DNA of 54,231 nucleotides from Salpingoeca rosetta (GCA_033442325.1 JAWQFM010000015.1:1277096-1331326); one strand, 5' to 3'; counted from the stretch's first letter, positions 3,340 through 22,940 are shown. Notes: generated from the letters alone by a model not told the origin. Numbers and translations are program-made.

Positions 3340-3885
3340 ATGTCCGAGAAGCAGCCACCAACGGGCCGAGGCCTCGGCGAGCGGGATGAGCAGCCGCCAC
3401 CATACTACCAAGCCCACCACGATCGCGTGAATGAGGAGGAGCCGCGCCGTGGCTTCGGAGAAGGCCAGCGGTCGCGCACCGCACGGGCCGTTGCCGAGTT
3501 TCCCGAGTACCAGCGGGTCCAACGCGTCTCCCACGAGCGCCAGGAAGAGTTCCGCAACACCATAGCAGGTGACAAGCAGCCTGAGCGGCGGCAGCCTGAG
3601 CAGCAGCGTGCCCGACACCCCCAAGTGCAGGAGGAAGACGAAGGCGCGCGTGATGACCGCCAGCAATACGAAGAAGCTTCTGCTCCGAAAGCCACTCCTG
3701 GCAAGAAGCGTTACAATCTGGAACCCATCGAGCACGTCAAGCAACGCGCCGAGCAAGCACCCCCCTCCGCTGAGAAGTACCTCCTTCTGCTTTGGGTGAG
3801 TTCCAAGATTGCCATTTTGATGTGTGACAGCTGGTTCTATGTCGCAACACAGCAAAACGCATTTCCAAACACGGACGTTTTGCGC

Positions 3886-3932
<47 letters not shown>

Positions 3933-4808
3933 CGCTGTGAATACGCTCGATTTGCCCCTCAACTCTTGCCATTGCTGTTGTTGCCCTTCGTTCTCCCCCT
4001 CACGTTTCGCAATCCCCCCCCCTAACACACCACGCACACACAACGCATGCACTGTCATCCAGGTTGGGCTGGTTTCTGTCGTGACTGGCCGTAGCCCCAC
4101 AAGAAAGACGCAACTGCTACGGCTGTTGCAGGATTCGAAACAACGCGCCGAGGAGGAAGAATACCTTGCGTGCGACTTAGACAGCTTTGACCGCATCGAG
4201 GACGACATCAACGCAGCCCAGTGGGAGGAGGCTCGCGCCAAAACCGAGTGCTTGCTGAGCGTCATCCGCCCGTTTGACATCCACAAGACACGGTACCTCA
4301 TCGGCCAGAGCCGCGTGTACGCAGCGGCAATGAAAGGCAGAAACGTCATCGTCTTCCTCGGTCGCTCGGGCGCCGGCAAATCCACCACCCTGCTCTACCT
4401 CTCCGGCTGCGAGATGATCCAGCGCGACAACGTCTATCACGACATTGGCCCTGCCCCCGGCGCTGCCCCCGAGGGCTTCAACGTCAACCCAAACCCCGAG
4501 TCAGAGACAGCGTACGTGCGTGACCTTCGCCTGCCAGCTGAGTTTGTGGACGAACTCGATGTTGACCTGGACGACGACACAATGGACATCTTCATGCTCG
4601 ACACCCCAGGTCAGAGGCGTTCAACCTTGAACCACAACACACCCATATTCCACCAGCCGTCGTCGCTTGCACACGTGCGCACACACACACACACATACTC
4701 ACACCGCACACGAACACACACACACGCACACGCTCCCATGCATATACTCCCACATATGCACATACGCACACGCACACGCACACACGCACACACACACACA
4801 CACACACA

Positions 4809-4847
<39 letters not shown>

Positions 4848-7800
4848 ATTTACATCTTTGCTCACCGCTTGGTCTCTGTTCCGTCGCCCGCACCTGAACT
4901 TTGCAGGCATTGGAGATAACTGCGGTCCAGAGGTTGACGTCGCCAACACCATCGGCATCCACCACGCCCTCAAGTCATGCAAGGGCTTCTGGCCCGTCGT
5001 TGTGCTCTCAAAACGCGACGGAAACAACTTTGAGCAGAGCAGAGACAGCTTGAAAGTTGCATCAAACCTCTTCAAGAACATGAGCAGCATCAAAAGTCGC
5101 CTGTCTTTCCTCTTCACCAAGTATGACAGCGTCGACGAGCACGCTGCGATTGAAGAGGCCTTCAAAGTCATCAACGAGCAAGTCCGGAAGTTGCCTGCTG
5201 ATGATCCTTACCGTATCATCGTCAAGGCTGTCAGCAACAAGCTGAGGCGCTTGCGCGGAAAAGAAATTGTCCTCCCACTCGACCCAGATCGCATAGTTGA
5301 TCACCTGAACGGCATGCTTGAGAAGGGTCCTGTCAACGCTAGGAACGTGGCCGACCAGCCATCCCTCCTCTCCACGTCTGAGACTGCAATGGCTGACCAG
5401 GCTCGCCTCAACCTCGATGCCATCCAGTTTGCCATGGAACGTGGCGAGTACGACCTCGCCGTTCAGCGCGTCAAGGAACTGCAGGACCTGCAGGAGGTGG
5501 TGCCGTCCGAGGAGGTGACGCGAGGCATGCGGGACGCTCAGCAGGCGATTGTGCAGCACCTTACGCGTGAGTTCAACGCTGTGGTGGAGCGCATCAACGA
5601 GTTCAAGGATGCTTCCACCGGCTTCATTGCCGTGGATGTGCTGGACACCCTCACCGCCATCGGCAACGCCACCCGCTTCTTCCAACACGAGCTGCCAAAC
5701 CTCGACCTCTCCGCCGTCTCTGCAGAGGTGACGGCCTCCGCCCTTGGCGACCTGGTCAACACACTGCAGCGGGACGTGGGCCGCGCTGAGCTCTCCGCCC
5801 ACGCGCGCGTCAACCAGGCCAACAAGCTGCGCACCCTCGTCAGCGCCATCAGCAGCATCCCTGCCGAGCGGTACGAGAGCGCTGCGCAGGGCCTCGCAGA
5901 CGAAGTGCTTTCGATGCAGCGGCGTGCTGTTGAGGCGCTCGAACAGCGACAGCTGCACGAGGCAGGCGATCTAGGCACAGCCACGCTGCAGGCTGCAGAC
6001 GCCTTTGCCGCCCACCTCGACGCCACCCGCACGGCCCAGCTGACAGGCGCCAGCGTGGGCTCCAGTGGCGCCGGCAGCAGCGGCAGCACATCGTCAACAA
6101 CAACAACAACAACAACAACAACAACGACGACGACGAGCACTGCCAGCAGCCAGAAGACCAGCGCCAGCAGCCTCCCTCAGCAGGTGGGCGAGTTCACCGG
6201 CCAAGTCGAAGTCGAAGCAGGGACCGCCCAGTCAGCGTCGCAGCGCATTGCTCCCTGGCGGGAGGCGTTCACCAAGTCATTGTTGGCTCTGATCCGTCAC
6301 CCATTTCAGCAAGCTCGTCACGCCCTCTCCGAACTCACCCCAAACAACTTGGGCCTGAAAGGACAGCCCGCTGTGGACGCGTTGGCAACAGCGCTGGCCC
6401 TCATCACCGATGTGCAGAAGACGCCTCGGCTTGCAGCCGTCATCGGCGCTCAGCAGCTGGAGTCGCTACTCGACCAGCTTGTGTTCGTGTGCGACGAGCA
6501 CCTCACCCACATCATCGATGAGATCAAGCGCGTGTGCCAGCAGGACCTGACCGACGCTCTTCAGCAGGCAGAGCCGCTTGTGATCCACCTCATCCGATTC
6601 CGCGACTTGCCCTCCGTAGACTTGGCGCGAAAGTACGCCCGCCACGAGGCCGCAGCGCGTGCAGAGGTTGTCCAGGTCGTTGGCACTGCCCAACAGCTCG
6701 TGCGCGACATTGTTGGGCACAAGCTCTTCAACAAAGACAACGCCGCTTACCGAGACAGGGCATTTTTGCCGGGCTTGTTGCAAGCCCTCAAAGCGGCCAC
6801 GTTTGCTAACCAGCTGCAGCCAAACATGATCGACACGACCATCGATACGCTGATCCGCAACGTGCGAGATGAGGCCTACCAATTCGTTGCGGTCGCCACC
6901 CGCATGCCCATCCAGCTCGACAACCCCGACATTGTTCCTGATGTGGCGGATGCAATCGACCAGCTCTCCGGTTTGCGTGCATTGGGCAGCGTCCTCGAAG
7001 GTGTCGATGAGGGCTACACCAAGGCCATTGATCATGTAAACGCAGGTGTTCAGCATATCATCGAAGACACGGAACGGTTTTTCTCTGAAATCCCAAAAGC
7101 CCCTGCCACCACCAACGCTGACGCGAGCGATGGCGACACGCGCCTTGACTTCCAGCTCGACCTGCGACGTGTGCGCCGCATTCACTACTTCCTCCACAAG
7201 GCGACAAAGGAGTGCATTCTCAACCACTACATTGCCAGCATCAACGATTTGAAGAACCTGCTGGAGGTCTCCATGATCAGCTATGGCGTCTACATCAGTA
7301 AATGCCTCTCCCACATCAGCACCGACGTGCTCCAAACGTTCGTGGACGAAGCGGCTTCCGATCTGGCGGCCGCCACCAAACGCCTGAGGACTGCTTGCCT
7401 CACGCTCCAGATCCGACTAGAGGACCTGCAGCGCATGGAGAAAGACTTTCCGGAACTGCATGAGCTGGCGTTCCAGACCACGCCACGAGAGCTCATCCTC
7501 TTGCGTCAGGATGCACAACATCGAGAAACCGAGTGCGAGCACCTCAAACACAGAGGCTTGCTGCCGGAATTACACCGTCACGTGCTGGCTGCAGGCGTTT
7601 TGCGTCAACTTGACGGCGTCCTCGATCTCCCACCAGGCGGCACGTACAACAACCTGTACGAGCGATTTGTCAAGGCAACGAGCGACTACGATGAAGACAC
7701 TCAGCGGCAGTTGACTGAAGCCATTGACCGCCGTGACTTCGGGCAGGCTGCCACTCTGCTGAGGCGCCTTCGCCACACAGGAACGACACCGCGGCCCACA

Positions 7801-10800
7801 TTGGACCAGTCAATTCTCACTGCGGTTGATGCCGTGTACTCCGAAAGCTGGAATCTTGCTCGTCAGATTACAACTTACTTCATGACGGGTGATGAGCTGC
7901 TCGCTCGGTTTGAAGATCTCGGACGAGCATTGCGTGATGTCAAGTCCACCAACGCCCTGCACGCTGCAGACTTGAAGCTCGTCAGCGACGAGCAGGCCAA
8001 GGAGTGGGAGGTCAAGCTCATCAACATGCAGCAATCGATGCACGAGTTCTTCCTCAGCGAGTGCATGTATGCAGAGGATAACATGCAGCGGTGTTGCTTT
8101 GCACTTGCCAAGGAACAACTCAATCTCCTACAGGCGTGCCTTGGAGCTGTTGCCCAAGAACTTGAGGGTCTGGACGATGTACAGGCGCGCATCAGCGACC
8201 TCAAAGCAAGCATTCTCAAGGGCCCCGAGGAGGCTGTTGCTGCCTTTGAGGGCTTGACATTGGAGGAAACCACCCGCAACCCACCACAGATTCTGACGCA
8301 CCTTGAGCAGGAGAGCGCACACATCAAGTCAGCGGTGAACGAGCACATGAGGAAGCTGCTGTCAGATTTTCGTGCACGATTGACAGCGGAAGACGTGACA
8401 AACGTAAACCAGGAGACAGTGACTCAACACTTGGACCACTTCAAGGCCCTCTGCCCTGACGACATCCAGCAGCAAGTGGACGTGGTCGCCGATGAAATTT
8501 TGGCGACGCTTCGCCAGCGCATCGCAACGCGCGCAAATCAGCTTGAGGAGCGTTTGGAACAGGATGACTGGGATGCTGTCAGGGCAGACGTGGAGGCGGC
8601 TCGCAAGCGAACAGGCGGCGAATTGTCAACCAAGATCTATGCGCAACTCACCGCAAAGGTCGAAGCCATCGCTGATGAGGCCTTATGCGCTCTCGACCGA
8701 AAACACGGACGCCAAGTGTTGCAGGCCGTGAGGCGTCTCGCCAAGTGCAAGGAGGTTGGCGTGCCAGCTGCCGCAGCAAAGCTGAAGGGGATCGTGCAGC
8801 AAACAAGGACCAAGCTCAGCAATGAGGTCCACATTATTGCTGATATGTTGGCCGCCCCACAACTCACCGAGACAGGAGCCGTCACACACGATGCAGTTGG
8901 GGCGTTCGTGAGCAGCTTTATCTACGCGCTCTATTTGGAGACGGCAGGCAATGTTGCCATCAAGCCGGCGACTCCAGCGGCAGGTGGTGCTGCGCTCAGT
9001 CGCTCTCTCAGCTTTGACGAGGCCGGCTCCATCCTGGATGACCTCTTCCAACGCGCCCATTCCTGTTCCGACGCAGCCGCGAAGCTTATGGAGGACGTGA
9101 ACAACTTGAAGTCTGCAATGAAGGAGCTCGAAGCTTCCAAAGTCGACTGGAAACAGTTTGCTGTCGGCAACACAGACTCGCTGGTGTACCAGTGTCGTCT
9201 CCTCGCTGCTCTCGGGACAGAACTGGCGAAGCCGTTGATCGCGCGGGAACTCAACCCTGGACCAGATGTGGTAGATGCCTGCATCAAATGCAAGGACAAC
9301 CTGGACAAGGCGCTCAAGGATGTGGACGAGCTGACGAGCCAGTGGTGCGAAACGAGCCAATCCATCGACGTGCTCGACGCTCGTTTCAACGTCAACTCAG
9401 AGGAGAGGCACAAGGCCTACTCGCGGCTGTACTGCACCCAGCGCTTGCTTGACCTGACCCATGACCTCGTCTCCTACGCCAATAACGGTGGCACTGCCCA
9501 GCTGAGACGGGTCAACTTTGCAGATTTTGTGGACACACAGGAGCAACAGATCAGCATGAGGCTCAAGAGTGCGCAAGCGTCCCGCAAGTACGACGAGCTG
9601 AATAGCCTCATGGACCACCTGAACAACATTGCTGCGCTCAGAAATGCCAAGCCACCGCCGTCTCTGGCAAAGTCAGTCGGATCCAAGCCAAGCTCTCCGT
9701 CGAAGGGCAAGCGAGGCAAAGGACGAGGCCGAGGGTCGAAACGAACCCTTCCGGAGCGATCGAATGGAGCGCGCCAGGCTTTTCAAACACCAGCGATGAT
9801 GGACCTTCAAACCCATCTCATGGAAGATGCGAACAAGCTGGTCGGCGAGTTGAAGCGCGCAAGAAGCAACGACGCCATTGCGCGCGCTTTGGTTGAGCTT
9901 CAGAAGATGGCTGACGGCGTGGAGTGTGTTCGTGATAGCATCACTCGGCAAGTGAGCGATTTCCTGGAGGTGTACAACAGGAAGAGCGAGACAAGCATCC
10001 CCAAACTTGGGCTGTGCCTTGAGCAACTCAAGTCGCCCGAAGCACAGCGTGTGCTGCAAGGATATGACGTGTTCACTGGGTATCTGCGTCGCCTCTTCAA
10101 CAACAAGATCAGCTCTGTGGGCATCGACGACGCGCTGAAGACGCTGTTGAAGGATGGCATCAATCACATGAGTGACAGCCACAAAACGGATCTCAAGACC
10201 ATGTATGATGAATTCTTGAAGCTGTACCACGACAACCTGAAAATGATCAAGGATGGGCAAAAGGCGGTGGACGCCCTTGCTGCTCGTGCCAAGACTTGCG
10301 CAGCCAAGGTGATGGACGAGCCTGATTTGCACAAGGATCAGCTCGATTGGACCGTTGACATGAAGGATGCGCTGCCACGACTTGTCGCCAACATCTTTGG
10401 CATGTGGACGCTGCACCATGCCAGCAACTCAAACCAGGCACGCGAGGAGCTCCTGCAGCCACACCCTTCCCAAGCCCTGGCCATCTTCCGCCTGCTTGGC
10501 GTTGGCACTGCGAAAGACGAGCTGCACTCCAACCTTGTGCAGGTCCTGACAGGACAAGGCAAAGCCGTCATCTTGGCTGTCACAGCATCTGTGCTTGCGC
10601 TGTACGGCATGCACGCCAGCGTCGCCTGCTACTCCGAGTACCTCAGCGTTCGTGACCACAAGGACTTCTCATTCTTGTTTGACAAGCTTGGCGTGGCTGA
10701 TTGTATCGAGTACGGCACGTTCAACGCCCTGTGCGAGTCGCACATCAACAAGGAGGGTGACATCCGCGAGCGCGTGCAGCACCTGATTCAAGAAGACGAG

Positions 10801-12912
10801 TTCTGGAAGCCTGGTCTAGTGAAGCGTGCCAAGGACAAAGCAGCTGCCTGGAAGGACAAGGCAGCAAGCTACTTCCCTGGAGGCACCAGCTCATCCAAGG
10901 TCCCACGGCCTCGCGTGCTGTTGATTGACGAGGTGGACGTGGCACTCGACCCAAGCATCATGAGCAACACGTACGCGCCCAACTGCAAAGTGACCAACCA
11001 AGCAATCAGGAAGTTGGTGATGTTCTTGTGGGACAACCGCGCAAGCAGGCTTACGTTTGCCAGGGTGTCCACCTCCGAGCAATACCAGTCTGTGCTGTCC
11101 TCACTGCAAGCCCCCTATCACGGTCTCCTCCGAAGCTGCGTGAACGCCATGATTATTGACCTGCAATCGTATGAGAACCACGGGTACGTGTTTGAGGGCG
11201 GCCGCATCGGTTACAAGCTGCACGACACCATCAACTACAAGATGCGCATGCGCTACAAGACCTTGTTTGCGCTCATGCACGAGCTTGAGAAGGCCGGAAC
11301 AGATGTCCACCGATCAAAGGACGTCAACACGGAACTCACCTTCCTCATCAACTGTGGCGCCTTCTCGTACTTTGAGGTGCAGCGCACGTTCGCCTGCACA
11401 CTCGGTGTGACGGGCACGCTCAAGGACCTGTCTGCTCCCGAGTTCAAGGTTTTGAAGGAAGACTACGGCATTCAGACATGCACGGTGATGCCGTCCATGT
11501 TTGGCGCGTCGCAGCTCAAGCCGTTTGAGGCAAACGACCTGAAGATTGTGCCCGCTGACCAGTACCATCTGACCACCACCCAGGAGATTCGCAAGCGCCA
11601 TGGACAGGGCCGTCCGGTGATTGTTCTGTTTGAGACGGAGAGAGACTTGCAAGAGTACTACCGGCACGACTCCCTTGGCGCCCTCATGCAGAACGTGCAG
11701 ATTCTGAGCGAGACGCTCTCCGCTTCAGAGAAGGAGACGATTGTGCGCAAGGCAACGCAGCAGAAGCGCATCACCCTTTGCACCCGCTCGTTTGGGCGCG
11801 GCGTGGACTTCCAGGTGCGTGACCCGGCCATCCCAGACAAGGGCGGCGTGCACGTGCTGCAAACGTTCTTGGCAGAGACGATGGCTGAGGAGCGGCAGTG
11901 CATGGGCCGCACGGCTCGGCAGGGTGAGCCAGGCAGCTACTCGATGGTGCTGTGCCGTGAGCAGCTAGAGAAGTTTGATGTGGACTTTGAAGCGCTCGAC
12001 AAGCAGGAGAGCAGTCACGAGCTGCGCAAGTATCTTCACAAGAGGCGGGATGAGGCGTTTGCGAAGAAGTTCAAGCAGTCGTACGAGATTGCGCGGGCTG
12101 TGAAGAAGGAGCACGAGGAATCGATGGCGTTCCTTGAGGAACTGAGTGACGAGCGCAAGGCTGAAGTGGTGAAGAAGCTTGAGAAGTGGAACTACACGCG
12201 CGAGGTGGCCTCCAAGGTCACGCGCACATTCTACGCACTCGATTGCACGTGCTCCATGGGCACAAATCTCAAGAAGACGGCACAGGTCATTGGCGTGGTC
12301 TTTGAGCGCATCGAGAAGATCCTCACAGATGCCGGCTTGCTTGGCAACAGCGACGTTGCAGTGCAGCTGGCGGCATACCGCAACTACAACGTGGATGCAG
12401 ACCAGCTGTTGCAGGTGTCTGGGTGGGAGCAGAACCCGCTTGCGCTGCGGCAGTTTCTGTTTGGCCTGGACGTGAACGGTGGCTGGGGCAACGAAGCGAT
12501 TGAGGTTGCGCTTCACCGCGCCAACATGGAGAAGGGCGTGTCGCAGGTGATTTTGATTGGCGACGCACCAGCCAACTCCCCAGATGAGGTGGCTGCTAAG
12601 CGCAACCATCGTCGTGAACGTTACTGGTCCAAGTTTCCCGAGTTTGCCAAATCCACGACCGCGGAGGCAGAGCTGCGAGAGCTGGCAAGCAAAGGCATCC
12701 CAGTTCACGCCTTCTTCATTGATCCTCGCGCCAAGAACTTCTTCAGACACGCTGCTCAGATGACTGGTGGGCGCTGCGAGTTCCTGGACATTGAGAAGGC
12801 GTCTGGCGCCGACCAGCTCACGAATCTTGTTTCCGAAGAGCTGCTGCGGCGCGCGGGCGGCGAACAAGGCAACCAACTCGTCGACACCTATCGAGCCACC
12901 TTCTGCAAGTGA
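3340..12912 (+). CDS. Giant multidomain protein (~2,979 aa): N-terminal P-loop GTPase, long helical region, SecA-type DEAD-like SF2 ATPase, C-terminal vWA domain
   Basis: Exons 3340-3795, 4132-4609 and 4907-12912 are phase-consistent. GTPase motifs: G1 [10 protein letters not shown]3 LDTPG|IGDN across intron 2, G4-like FTKYD. SecA-like motifs: [52 protein letters not shown]. vWA MIDAS: [22 protein letters not shown]. Confidence 0.85.
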
Positions 12913-19013: not shown

Positions 19014-21984
19014 GCACGCACACACACACACACCACACCACACACACACACACACATGCACACGAACGATCCCTCATTTGTTTCACCTCGTTGAAGTCAT
19101 CCAGTGCAAACTGCTTGAGGGTGTCGAGTGCCACGTCACCACTGCGCTGCTGCGAATGCACGCGCTCAATTGGATGCAACATGACGTCAACGGGAAGCAT
19201 GCGAATCTTCGTGTCCTGGAAGCCAGCAAACAGCGACCTGCCCAATATGGCAAGTGAGGTGACGTCACCCATACCGAGAAAGGAAACCGTCATGAGTGGC
19301 GAAAAGGGGGCGTTGGCCCTCCACGATCGCACGGTGCTGTCACTCGAAGCACTGAACAGAATGTGGTCCTTGTCCTTGTTCGAAACAGCCTTGCCCTCGC
19401 TCGTGTTGCTGCTGCTGCTGCTATCATCATCATCACCATCACCACCACCATCATCATGGCCATTGTCACCATCACTGCTGCTGTGGCAGCGTGCGTTTGC
19501 GTGTGCTGTTGATGTGAGTGAGAGCACTGCGTCGTCGTGGCCTTCCAGCTGCGCCAGCCGCCTCCACTGCACACATGTGCAAACGTCAATGGAGATGTGC
19601 GCGTGTGAGTAGTGTTGTGATGAGTGCGAGGGTGTGTGTGCACGTGTGTGCATGTGTGTGTATGTGTGTGTATGTGTGTGTATGTGTGTGTATGTGTGTG
19701 TATGTGTGTGTGTGTGTGCGTGTCATTATAGGCGTTGGAAACCAGAATTGTGTGTTGTCAGAGTAAATGTCCAAATCAAAGCTGCGTCACAACCAAACAA
19801 TACAAAAGGGCAGCAGGCGACATCCACGGCGGCATGACAAGGGCTCACCGTCTCGGAATCCCAGACTGTGATGGTGCTCGCATTGGACCCCGTAAACACC
19901 AGCGAGCCAACAATCTCAAAGCACAACACATTCGCTGTCGTGTGCGTGCGTATGCGCATGTGTATGTGTGTATGTGTGTATGTGTGTGTTGGAGTACGTG
20001 AACCATGTGAGCAATGGCGCAGCCATGTTTGTGGGCAGTGAATGGAACATGGACAACGCCACTATCAACGCGTGTTCATTCACACCAACATGCTGTGTTC
20101 CACTCCACGTGTATGCAGGAGCATGCATGTTTGTGTGTGTGTGTGTGTGTGTATGTGTGTGTGTGTGTATGTGTGTATGTGTGTATGTGTGTGTATGTGT
20201 GTGTGCGTGCATGCGTGTGTGTGCATGTGTGTTCGTATGAGGAAGAAGCTCACCCGTGTGTGAGATGTCGTGGTGCCCAGCAGTCATGCTGCTCACATCG
20301 CAATTGGCGACGGCTGGAACGAACAGACAACAGCGATCGTCACAGACAGGTGAACCAGGGATGAGGAGCCGGTCCACAATTAAGAGAACATGGCAAAGTA
20401 ACATGCACATGTTGTGCATGTGCACACCCAGCACAAGCGAGCAAACACCAACAAACACAAGCATGTGAAACAAACAAACAAACAAGCAAGCAAGTGAGCA
20501 AGTGAGCGAGCAAACGAAACACGTGTGCGGCACCTTGTGCAGACTTTGGGACGCATGAGCGGGTGAGGCAGTCTGTGACGCTTGGATGGCAGCTGGGCTG
20601 TTCGCCATGAATGGGAGACAGCAGCACGTCAATCTCGCGTGAGATTGTCAGCGTGTACCCAGGAGGGACAGGCAACCTTCACGTACGGCGATCGTGTTGA
20701 TCAAGCAGTGGTGGATTGGATGGCGATGGTGAGGGTGACGAGTGGGTGCCAGAGTCACGTGCAGTGATGTGAACCTGCATCTTCACAGGCACACACAGAC
20801 ACAGACAGACAGACAGACACACACACAGGCACACACGCACACAGAACAGACACAGACACACAGACACAGACACACAGACACAGACACACACACACACAGA
20901 AACACACACACATGCACACACACACACACACACACGCACACACACACCAACCAGTCGGAGGTGGTGTTGGTGAGGGGCTCTGATGCGACGATAACAACGC
21001 GATGCCTCCGGTCCGCGTGCGACATGCGGTAAACGCCCATCGAATCATGTACGCATTCATAACCGGCACCTGCTGAGAAGTAGAGCGTGGCTGCACCCGT
21101 CTGCGTGCTGTCTGGGTCGCGAAGATAGCGCGTGCACACGGTGTGCTCCCCGTCCGTCAGCACAAAGTTGAGCATGCTCGCCTGCCGCAGGTTGTGCTTG
21201 TCTGCGAGCGTGTCAAGGTCCTTGATGACGGACACCACGTGCTCCCGGATTTGCTCGCACGTGAGCGGGGTGGATGGGTCGCGTGGCAGCCTGTTCAGGA
21301 ACATGGCGAAACAAAGCGCCGAGTCGCTCGAGCCCTATGCGAATTGCGGAGGGGGTTGTGTGTGTTTGTGTGTTTGTGAGTGTGTTTGTGTGTTTGTGTG
21401 TGTGTGTGTGTGTGTGTTTGTGAGTGTGTTTGTGTGTGTGTTTGTGTGTTTGTGTGCGTGTGTGTTTGTGAGTGAGTGTGTGTGTTTGTGAGCGCGTTTG
21501 TATGTTTGTGTGTGTGTTTGTGAGTGAGTGTGCGAGAGTGTGTGAGTGTATCTACCAACTGTGCTGTGCGAACGATTGTGTACGCGCGTCAACACGCACG
21601 CGCGTCCACATGAGTGTCTGCATATGCACGTATATGAGCCTGTCCCGGTTCCCCAGCACGTACCCTGGCGACTGCAAAGTCAAACGCGTCTCCCTCGAGC
21701 GTTGGAAGAACAAGGCGGCGCACGCGCTCAAAGTTGCCGATGTTGCCGTTGTGCATGAACATGTACCGCCCAAACCGAAACGGGTGGCAGCTGCAAAGGA
21801 GAGACAGACAGGTGGGCAAGGAGAAGATGAGTGAAGCAGGTGTGAGATTGCAGTCGTTCATGGTACAGACATGCCGTATCAGGAAATAGCAAATGCAGCA
21901 AACACAGCAAACCACAGCAAGCGCAGCAAACACAACAAAACACAGCAAGCAGGCCTATTGTCACGCAGAGACATTTCCACAAAC

Positions 21985-22045
<61 letters not shown>

Positions 22046-22940
22046 AGTTCGGTGACGTCTGTGCCTTCCGTCGCTGCGCGGACGTGTGCAAAGACGATGG
22101 AGGCGGTGATGCTCTCCGAGAGCTGGCGCAGGTTGGTGCTGTTCCATGCCGGCCCCGTCCCCGTGAAGACGCATGGCTCCGAGCGCTGGAAACACGTGCC
22201 AGCGAGCGACTCTGAGTTTGGCGGTGGGATATCCGGTCCGTGGGCTTCGAGACTGGCCCTGTGTCGGGCCTCTGCCGTGGAGGAGAAAGAGCACGGCGCA
22301 TGGTGCTGCTGCTCTTGCTGCTGTTGGTTGTCATTGGCGTCCTCATTCTCGCACGACTCACGCGGGCTCGTTGTTGTGGAGCAAGACGAGTGCTCTGGCT
22401 GCGCGCGGTGGTCCTGAGGCCCTTGATTCGGCCGCAGTTCAGCTGCACACGTGCTTGGAGAGTCCTCCAGCACAGGCACCAGCGGATACCACCCAAGGCC
22501 GAACCCATCGCCGTTCAAATACCCTCGCTCCGTCACTCGCTCCCGTGCTGGTTAGAGTTGTCAGGGGGAGGGGGGGAGGAAACAGAAGGGATCATTGCGT
22601 GTGCGTGTATATGTGTGTGTGTGTGTGCGTGAGTGTGTGTGTAGGTGTGTGAGTGTAGGTGTGTGTGTAGGTGTGTGTGTGTGTGTGTGTGTGTGTGGAG
22701 GTGTGTGTGTGTGGAGGTGTGTGTGTGTGCGTGTGTGTGTGTGTGTAGGTGTGTGTGTGTGAACACAACATGCACACACACACACACACGTACGCACACA
22801 CACACACACATACACACGCGTGCATGTACACACACATGCACCCAACCTGCGTAGCTCTGGCGGATGATACTGCGGCTTGGGCGTGTCACCAAGTGGGCGG
22901 GCGCAATGGGCGGCCCAACGTACGCTGTAAGACGGCACAT
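13289..22940 (-). CDS. Dug3-Dug2 fusion: class II (Ntn) glutamine amidotransferase + WD40 repeats + M20 peptidase-like domain; probable gamma-glutamyl-cleaving glutathione hydrolase
   Basis: GATase II motifs: MCRL start, [58 protein letters not shown]40 motifs: [49 protein letters not shown]20 motifs: [69 protein letters not shown]. About 20 exons, with phases checked continuously from 22940 to 17323. Part of the M20 domain probably lies in the N-gap at 16371-16895. The last exon (13622-13289) is less certain. Confidence 0.85.
14093..14252. repeat. (GAGT)n tetranucleotide microsatellite, intronic
   Basis: Directly visible tandem GAGT; a second tract is at 16897-17032. Confidence 0.9.
14866..14933. 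repeat. (ATGT)n microsatellite, intronic
   Basis: Directly visible tandem repeat. Confidence 0.9.
15354..15484. repeat. (AAAC)n microsatellite, intronic
   Basis: About 32 perfect copies visible. Confidence 0.95.
16371..16895. other. Assembly gap (N run) inside the Dug3-Dug2 gene
   Basis: 525 Ns. The expected M20 segments (HxD and GRG..D.KG) are absent from the flanking exons, so they likely lie here. Confidence 0.95.
17061..17104. repeat. 44-bp dispersed repeat, copy 1 (identical copy at 34162-34205)
   Basis: gtacttgtgtgtttgtgcgtgcacgtacgtgcgtgagtgggtga occurs at both loci, each preceded by (GAGT)n and (GT)n. Confidence 0.8.

Follow-up and report, generated by a model that had tools for sequence, protein, structure and literature searches.

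What is a SecA-like motor doing near the end of a giant protein that is encoded by a choanoflagellate and appears to be cytosolic? The question is raised by a gene of Salpingoeca rosetta located on the plus strand, at positions 3340-12912, of a 54,231-nucleotide stretch of DNA (GCA_033442325.1 JAWQFM010000015.1:1277096-1331326; referred to below as the window, in whose coordinates and on whose plus strand all positions are given). A preliminary description, made from the sequence alone, had seen in it a GTPase, a helical region, a SecA-type ATPase and a von Willebrand factor A (vWA) domain with a metal ion-dependent adhesion site (MIDAS), and the Pfam, PDB and model matches described below back all the motifs listed there for these domains, each at its place. 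As judged from its sequence and from predicted models, the gene product is a soluble cytosolic protein in which the GTPase, a long rod, the SecA-derived module and the vWA domain are carried by one chain, and there is about an even chance, in our view, that it serves as a nucleotide-gated protein-capturing machine in the conflict between eukaryotes and bacteria.

The C-terminal module (amino acids 1992-3002, 1,011 residues, 9877-12909), which is 30-42% identical in all homologues, was modelled by AlphaFold2 (AF2) with a predicted local distance difference test (pLDDT) value of 85.9 and a predicted template modelling (pTM) score of 0.81. It begins with a conserved helical lead-in (model residues 1-90, 9877-10146), seen in the alignment and in the AF2 model, which is followed by the SecA-like module proper (model residues 91-775, 10147-12201), identified by Pfam, PDB, Foldseek and VIA comparisons. 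The Pfam gathering scores are passed for SecA_DEAD (31.1 against 24.6), for P-loop_SecA (32.6 against 27) and also for Helicase_C, and SecA chains of the PDB are matched at an E value of 1e-10 with the single sequence and of 1e-17 with the family profile. Foldseek comparison of the AF2 model, a check that had been proposed in the preliminary description, gave SecA as by far the closest structure (E 5e-17), the next class, DEAD-box proteins and DinG, being found at 2e-7. In the VIA comparison model residues 91-810 match SecA and SecA2 structures (SecA residues 11-750) with Z of 22-25, with 450-557 residues aligned to full-length SecA and 384 to the motor-only construct 3bxz. The family profile is colinear in one stretch with residues 95-552 of the B. 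subtilis SecA, through nucleotide-binding domain 1 (NBD1), the preprotein cross-linking domain (PPXD) and NBD2 and including SecA-typical segments near the PPXD exit and motif III, and it is colinear with positions 221-590 of TIGR03714 as well.

Within this module the Walker A motif of NBD1 reads TGQGKA (10549-10566, with TGQGK at 10549-10563), and motif II is DEVD (10927-10938), following which an alpha/beta insert of ~150 residues is found at the PPXD position (model residues 355-505, 10939-11391). Motif III, GVTGT, is at 11404-11418, NBD2 contributes motif V, GRGVDF (11794-11811), and motif VI, GRTARQG (11905-11925), and a 42-residue scaffold-like helix (model H716-757, 12022-12147) follows NBD2. 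Residues D351, E352, D354, G513, T514, R641, G642, D644, R678 and R681 are invariant in the alignment. What is held in common with SecA and SecA2 comprises motifs I, II (DEVD), III (TGT), V (GRGxD) and VI (GRxxRQGxxGS) of the two NBDs, the insert of ~150 residues that separates motifs II and III at the place of the PPXD, and the long helix after NBD2.

The module differs from SecA and SecA2 in being only 15-19% identical to them and in lying at residues ~2,080-2,770 of a 3,002-residue chain. SecA acts with SecYEG on signal-peptide substrates at a membrane, and the context of the window protein, with no sign of a membrane or of SecYEG, argues against such a role; its Walker A ends in GKA, and in the predicted model its vWA domain stands at the place of the wing domain, the two-helix finger and the C-terminal tail of SecA. 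The structural alignments stop at SecA residues ~730-750 and the vWA domain begins at model residue ~778, and in the model it appears to occupy the place of the wing domain and the two-helix finger, with no room between the helix and the vWA domain. The NCBIfam equivalog models for SecA and SecA2 (TIGR00963, NF009538, TIGR03714 and others) gave at best 57.8 bits against a cut-off of 930, and otherwise 22-54 bits against cut-offs of 725-1100. No signal peptide, transit peptide or membrane segment was found in the 3,002-residue protein, whose only 19-residue hydrophobic window lies inside the motor; the preliminary description had likewise noted the lack of a signal or transit peptide. Since there is no targeting signal, the organism has no plastid and the scores are far under the equivalog cut-offs, the protein is taken to be a relative of SecA that has been repurposed outside Sec translocation, which agrees with what had been suggested earlier. 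On sequence and model grounds it is a member of the SecA superfamily with a SecA-type two-RecA motor; it is not a SecA orthologue and very probably not a Sec translocase.

The vWA domain that closes the chain (12208-12909, model residues 778-999) was compared by VIA with integrin beta-I domains, to which 188-196 residues over model residues 778-999 are aligned with Z of 17-18. Its MIDAS motif, D-x-T-x-S, reads DCTCS (12241-12255), and the beta4 aspartate lies in IGDA (12553-12564); the MIDAS Asp, Thr and Ser and the beta4 Asp are invariant in the alignments (A2/A3). Pfam recognizes the domain in a part of the 45 aligned homologues (VWA_4 in 14, VWA_2 in 11 and VWA in 5), with the window's own sequence falling below the Pfam thresholds. 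In the PDB sequence profile searches the vWA domain gave nothing and the N-terminal block gave only generic P-loop matches, so that the folds of both the GTPase and the vWA domain were identified from models. By motif and predicted structure the C-terminal domain is a vWA fold with a MIDAS motif, and the MIDAS-bearing vWA domain of the preliminary description is thereby upheld, on the strength of the fold (Z ~18 to integrin beta-I) and the invariant motif, with no Pfam threshold reached by the window sequence itself.

At the other end of the chain a conserved N-terminal block (amino acids 195-706, 4189-6021, interrupted by intron 2), conserved in 102 fetched homologues, contains the GTPase domain (~amino acids 258-503, 4378-5412), with a conserved helical bundle after it. 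Its motifs are G1, GRSGAGKST (4360-4386), the switch-I SET (4501-4509), G3, DTP(G), which is spread across intron 2 (4600-4609 and 4907-4908), and G4, FTKYD (5113-5127). In an alignment of 72 sequences GxxGxGKST (G1, GxTGxGKST), the switch-I SET(R) and DTPGFxDTxGPEVD are invariant or nearly so, while the G4 aspartate is not conserved: TKYD in the window protein and TKCD in the orthologue of Microstomoeca roanoka stand against a family consensus of TKYP/TKFP (FTK[YF]). The AF2 model of the orthologous M. roanoka segment (pLDDT 87) shows a TRAFAC G domain followed by helices. Its top fold matches are Toc34 (Z 13.9), GIMAP2 (13.8) and GIMAP7 (13.6), with Nog1, Era and EngA within ~1 Z unit; 155-192 residues are aligned to Toc34, GIMAP and Era at Z 12-14, and the Foldseek list further includes Mx, dynamin, mitofusin, GBP and IRG. 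Pfam AIG1 was not matched even at E values up to 0.1, only P-loop fragments being returned, and no GBP or dynamin match was obtained. A complex prediction for a G-domain homodimer with GTP and Mg scored 0.01, which speaks neither for nor against binding.

By its motifs and its modelled fold, the N-terminal domain is a GTPase-fold domain of the TRAFAC class. The earlier assignment to the AIG1/GIMAP/IRG type holds insofar as the fold is concerned and does not hold for membership of those families, given the near tie in fold resemblance with Era, Nog1 and EngA and the lack of a Pfam AIG1 match. The protein resembles GIMAP/AIG1, Toc34, GBP, Mx and IRG proteins in having a TRAFAC G domain followed by helical extensions, and differs from them in Z values nearly tied with those to Era, Nog1 and EngA and in the unconserved G4 aspartate; a true GBP domain, together with jacalin, is present at the head of one family member, but Pfam GBP is not matched by the window protein.

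Between the conserved blocks lies a divergent central region of ~1,300 residues (amino acids 707-1991, 6022-9876), which is opened by a Ser/Thr run (amino acids 724-746, 6073-6141). BLAST aligns it in just 1-3 of 249 homologues, it is hardly alignable beyond the choanoflagellate clade, and an ESM Atlas search with the central 1,284 residues gave no usable match. Its composition favours helix, with few Pro and Gly and many helix-forming residues. More than 1,500 residues of helical-looking sequence had been announced earlier; for the central ~1,300 the helicity is supported by composition and by the modelled helical flanks only. The 13 Thr codons in the Ser/Thr tract mark the border of the conserved N-terminal block and the divergent rod.

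That these domains belong to one transcript is argued for by the structure of the gene and by comparison with its relatives. The gene has three exons, and its spliced coding sequence of 9,009 nucleotides encodes 3,002 amino acids plus the stop, a little more than the ~2,980 residues estimated before. Exon 1 (3340-3795, amino acids 1-152) opens with the ATG at 3340, upstream of which no in-frame ATG was found, and encodes a polar, acidic, low-complexity head. Intron 1 (3796-4062, 267 nucleotides, GT..AG) is followed by exon 2 (4063-4609, amino acids 153-335, ending with the first base of codon 335), which encodes a helical lead-in and the first half of the G domain; intron 2 (4610-4906, 297 nucleotides, GT..AG) splits the Gly codon of DTPG; and the remainder, amino acids 335-3002 and the stop, is encoded by exon 3 (4907-12912), a single exon of 8 kb. 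The sole interruption of the plus-strand frame over 3340-12912 is an in-frame TGA at 4846-4848, within intron 2. Microsatellites occupy much of both introns, with (GT)n in intron 1 and (AC)n/(CT)n in intron 2 (3878-3940 and 4668-4855).

The closest protein is that of M. roanoka (P0001), also a choanoflagellate, with 55% identity in the C-terminal module and 37% along the full chain. It is a complete open reading frame (ORF) of 2,809 amino acids in a transcriptome and is colinear with the window protein from amino acid 123 to the end, over both exon junctions, which speaks against the arrangement raised in the preliminary description, a cDNA with the GTPase exons on a separate transcript. The exon 1 block KRY.LEP.E.V..R and the junction align with the M. 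roanoka transcript and with paralogue B, the junction of intron 1 (...LLLLW|VGL...) pairing with ...TLLW LDL... in M. roanoka, and intron 2 is found at the identical position (DTPG) in both full-length paralogues, B and C. The stretch where exons 1 and 2 are joined (YLLLLWVGLVSVV) was considered as a membrane anchor and dismissed, because it is short, with only ~15 hydrophobic residues, and the orthologue carries charged residues at the same place. Three RNA-seq runs of the species from 2026 contain 11-77 reads of the gene, nearly all 95-99% identical, and all of them sense-oriented as a stranded library should give; these reads probably derive from a diverged allele or strain. Run X1 behaves like DNA, with even depth over the introns. 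In the window interval 5479-6669, the X1 DNA contigs and all RNA reads share consistent differences, e.g. at 5661, 5665, 6221 and 6426-6468. It seems that a second allele or strain variant of the gene exists and is the source of the RNA reads.

The gene is intact and under selection. In the assembly (55.4 Mb, 68 contigs) two further intact paralogues were found, B on contig 15 (~558.6-567.4 kb), the window's own contig, ~710 kb upstream, and C on contig 31 (~422.5-431.5 kb), together with a fourth, C-terminal fragment (contig 31:328449-329285) that covers the last 290 residues, i.e. the vWA domain, at 82-86% identity, contains one TAA and is probably a pseudogene remnant. The window copy (A), B and C have open frames of ~2,670 codons and a pairwise dN/dS ratio (omega) of 0.22-0.44 in every region, which answers the call of the preliminary description for a paralogue count and a dN/dS estimate with three intact copies under purifying selection. 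The paralogues are 57-58% identical in the central rod as against 80-88% in the motor. The identity is also mosaic: in the vWA domain A and B are 88% identical, compared with 64-67% to C, whereas in the rod B and C are 80% identical, compared with 57-58% to A. Since, in addition, dS between the copies varies along the gene from 0.15 to 0.9 (compared with window positions 4909-12909), gene conversion among A, B and C is suggested by these sequence comparisons.

The wider family is large. A HMMER scan with the last 870 amino acids returned 5,270 representative clusters (counted at 50% identity) at E <= 0.001 and 813 at E <= 1e-30, the match being nearly always C-terminal in proteins of ~3,000 residues. 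The search for the architecture over protists and animals that had been recommended shows the three-block layout to be the norm of the family, all three blocks being present in 128 of the 140 fetched homologues of at least 2,500 residues. Its eukaryotic sources include the choanoflagellates M. roanoka and Salpingoeca macrocollata, the foraminifera Reticulomyxa, Nonionella and Bolivina, the vampyrellid Leptophrys, the diplonemid Sulcionema, Hexamita, Tetrahymena and many bdelloid rotifer paralogues; no fungal, plant or vertebrate protein was found among the named matches. With one genome per bacterial species, the relatives in GTDB are mostly from Legionellales, Coxiellaceae, gammaproteobacterial metagenome-assembled genomes (MAGs), Chlamydiae and Wolbachia, and single MAG contigs with relatives are assigned to Margulisiibacteriota, Actinomycetota, Curvibacter and Francisella/Thiotrichales. 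In Wolbachia and Chlamydiae the matching loci cover the motor part only (query residues ~56-760), and weak matches restricted to NBD2 in Lentilactobacillus are probably ordinary SecA or SecA2.

The second-best match of all is a bacterial homologue (P0002), 42% identical in the C-terminal module. Its neighbours on either side (locus L043:1-9798 and 20330-22738) are four very large repeat proteins of the TPR_12/NPHP3 type, and the genome contains ordinary bacterial housekeeping genes. Two bacterial members lie in an ordinary bacterial gene neighbourhood with no conserved partner. Copies A, B and C form a fully supported group with M. roanoka in a tree of the C-terminal module, where branches of bacteria alternate with those of eukaryotes; the tree was rooted at its midpoint and contains long branches, and for this reason does not settle the direction of transfer. 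The heads are variable, with a U-box in 3 of 60 (including P0022, from a gammaproteobacterial MAG), an Ulp1/RickCE-like peptidase, or GBP plus jacalin, and the U-box heads belong to bacterial members wherever the source is known. The head of the window protein contains the motif PPPY (amino acids 19-22, 3394-3405, in exon 1), which recurs at the same place in the M. roanoka orthologue and in paralogue B and is in each of these three proteins the single PPxY of the chain; it was not seen upstream of paralogue C. This motif may be a docking site for the WW domain of a Nedd4-type ubiquitin ligase, and together with the U-box and deubiquitinase-like heads of some homologues it gives a link to ubiquitin that is only suggestive.

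The existence of such genes was known before. Very long "eukaryotic secA" genes have been described from insects, Daphnia, Tetrahymena, Polysphondylium and Salpingoeca sp., together with transfers of giant secA genes from eukaryotes into Wolbachia (wBol1_1091, wBol1_1092) and Amoebophilus (Aasi_1610, Aasi_1144) (Duplouy et al. 2013, PMC3639933); lfa2470 of L. fallonii, a SecA DEAD-like gene, has been listed among eukaryote-derived genes (Gomez-Valero et al. 2014, PMC4256840), and SecA-like helicase-related and GIMAP-type domains have been noted among Amoebophilus effectors (Zhang et al. 2012, PMC3482391). The genes of the first of these reports resemble the window gene in being very long and intron-poor with a C-terminal secA domain, and Salpingoeca sp. 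is named there, but the passages on these genes deal with the secA domain and horizontal transfer only, and not with a GTPase, a vWA domain or MIDAS, or a mechanism (PMC3639933). As far as the relevant parts of those papers go, the family's existence is established and the GTPase-rod-SecA-vWA architecture, the MIDAS, the insert at the PPXD position and the function are undescribed in them; full-text literature searches found no functional study of the family. The secondary SecA_DEAD proteins of type I secretion (PMC4452313), compared by their published description only, were set aside, being bacterial and placed in a type I secretion gene neighbourhood.

How, then, might such a chain work? In the model favoured here, that of a nucleotide-gated protein-capturing machine, a target protein would be caught at one of its acidic residues by the MIDAS of the vWA domain, an extended segment of polypeptide would be gripped by the SecA-like clamp under the control of ATP, the GTPase would gate assembly or activation, and the variable rod and head would set the specificity for targets or partners. 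The setting would be an encounter of bacterivorous or host eukaryotes with intracellular bacteria that carry copies of their own, some of them with heads from the ubiquitin system. The comparative data point to a conflict-type pattern, namely a patchy presence across rotifers and protists that feed on bacteria, paralogues that are specific to single lineages and evolve fast in their middle part, and bacterial copies that belong largely to intracellular symbionts or pathogens, some of them with U-box or deubiquitinase-like heads. A more specific version, to which only a low probability is given, holds that the family is an unrecognised class of eukaryotic cell-autonomous immune machine, in which GTPase-gated assembly on the bacterium or its vacuole would be followed by capture through the MIDAS, and the SecA-derived clamp would hold or unfold the captured protein for ubiquitin-dependent disposal, for which, in choanoflagellates, an E3 ligase with a WW domain could be recruited by the PPPY; the gene, once captured by intracellular bacteria, would have been given U-box or deubiquitinase-like heads as counter-weapons.

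It has to be noted that several observations weigh against the protein-capturing machine. The window copy, paralogue B and the M. roanoka orthologue share the Walker A motif TGQGKA, in contrast to the GKS of paralogue C and the GKS or GKT that is kept by 227 of the 228 other homologues fetched. In P-loop NTPases the Ser/Thr at this place normally ligates Mg-ATP, and its replacement by Ala makes a vigorous or processive motor less likely. The full SecA-like motif set of the preliminary description is therefore present with this one substitution, the remaining catalytic motifs of the window motor being all intact. The window copy may bind ATP and turn it over slowly, and judging from these motifs a role as an ATP-bound clamp or switch is more probable for it than that of a processive motor. 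The anti-pathogen effector proposed before is in keeping with the conflict-type distribution, and the ATP-driven motor is the part of that proposal which is weakened. The GKA and GKS paralogues provide a natural contrast for testing the importance of ATP hydrolysis. Beyond this substitution, the apparent loss of the two-helix finger and the wing domain is read from a predicted model. The omega of ~0.35 indicates purifying and not positive selection, and the PADLOC defence models gave no match for the window protein and only noise-level ones for homologues. Finally, the RNA reads of the three runs are thin and confined to exon 3, with none in exons 1-2 and no splice joint seen, so that the transcript structure rests on the comparison of paralogues and orthologue, and these reads do not prove expression of the window copy.

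Other readings of the same chain were considered. The two-RecA module could bind RNA or DNA, as in a nucleic-acid-directed helicase or sensor of superfamily 2 (SF2) resembling the RIG-I-like receptors, with the GTPase and the vWA domain used in signalling, and Helicase_C is indeed above its cut-off, DEAD-box, DinG and XPD structures are also matched by the module, and the SecA of E. coli has been reported to possess RNA helicase activity. This is regarded as doubtful, as the matches to SecA are better by 10-12 orders (1e-17 against 3e-5 and 5e-17 against 2e-7) and the SecA-specific insert between motifs II and III is retained, as is the SecA-type motif VI (GRxxRQGxxGS). Just as doubtful is a housekeeping mechanochemical remodeller, which would strip factors from a large assembly in the manner of midasin/Rea1 or would remodel membranes or the cytoskeleton. 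In its overall layout the window protein resembles midasin, sharing with midasin/Rea1 and with MoxR-vWA systems an NTP-driven motor, a terminal vWA domain of the integrin beta-I type with MIDAS, a long helical linker and a giant chain; moreover, a GTPase followed by a helical stalk recalls dynamin-like proteins, and the selection observed is purifying. The motor, however, is an AAA+ ring in midasin/Rea1 and an SF2/SecA-type two-RecA module with an additional GTPase here, and a P-loop match was the only sequence relationship to midasin that was found. The patchy distribution with no fungal, plant or vertebrate protein among the named matches, the interleaved branches, the several diverging paralogues with mosaic identity and the bacterial copies in largely intracellular lineages also speak against a housekeeping role, for which an omega of ~0.35 seems, in our judgement, high for a core machine.

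It is quite improbable that the gene is a horizontally acquired passenger or a decaying relic with no function in the host. Such an origin would fit its having just two introns, both 5'-proximal, and a single 8-kb exon, the truncated fourth copy with its stop codon, the Ser to Ala change in Walker A, the very thin RNA coverage and the rank of a bacterial protein (42% identity) as second-best match; but three copies with open frames of ~2,670 codons at omega 0.22-0.44, spliceosomal intron positions common to paralogues, a complete transcript of the orthologue in another genus and the intactness of the other catalytic motifs are hard to reconcile with decay. A genuine translocation motor of the SecA type, placed at a channel of an organelle or of the endomembrane system, could be argued for from the kinship to SecA as the closest known protein and from the retention of both the PPXD-position insert and the scaffold-like helix. 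It appears exceedingly unlikely in view of the missing signal or transit peptide and membrane segment, the NCBIfam SecA scores (22-58 bits, with cut-offs at 725-1100), the other domains, ~2,100 residues in all, that precede the motor, and the vWA domain that in the model follows the scaffold-like helix in place of the wing domain and the two-helix finger.

SecA is regarded as the dedicated motor of bacterial and plastid secretion. In the present large family (813 clusters at 50% identity, E < 1e-30) a module derived from it would operate in the cytosol of eukaryotes that lack a plastid, as a fixed part of a chain that also carries a GTPase and a MIDAS domain, and the family moves between hosts and their intracellular bacteria. 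If the conflict reading is true, a new type of effector machine would be added to the immunity of early-branching holozoans, and giant proteins of Legionellales, Chlamydiae and Wolbachia would be explained in part; if the immune-machine version is true, a bacterial secretion motor would have been turned against bacteria. Salpingoeca rosetta is genetically tractable and its biology is governed by bacteria, so that the question is directly testable in this organism.

The same genome contains two further large ORFs with a C-terminal SecA_DEAD match at E ~1e-10, at contig 6:619443-624509 (1,689 amino acids) and contig 16:871879-876468 (1,530 amino acids), both of which are 28% identical to the window protein in NBD2 and which, from their sequences, look like a second, distinct kind of eukaryotic SecA-like protein.

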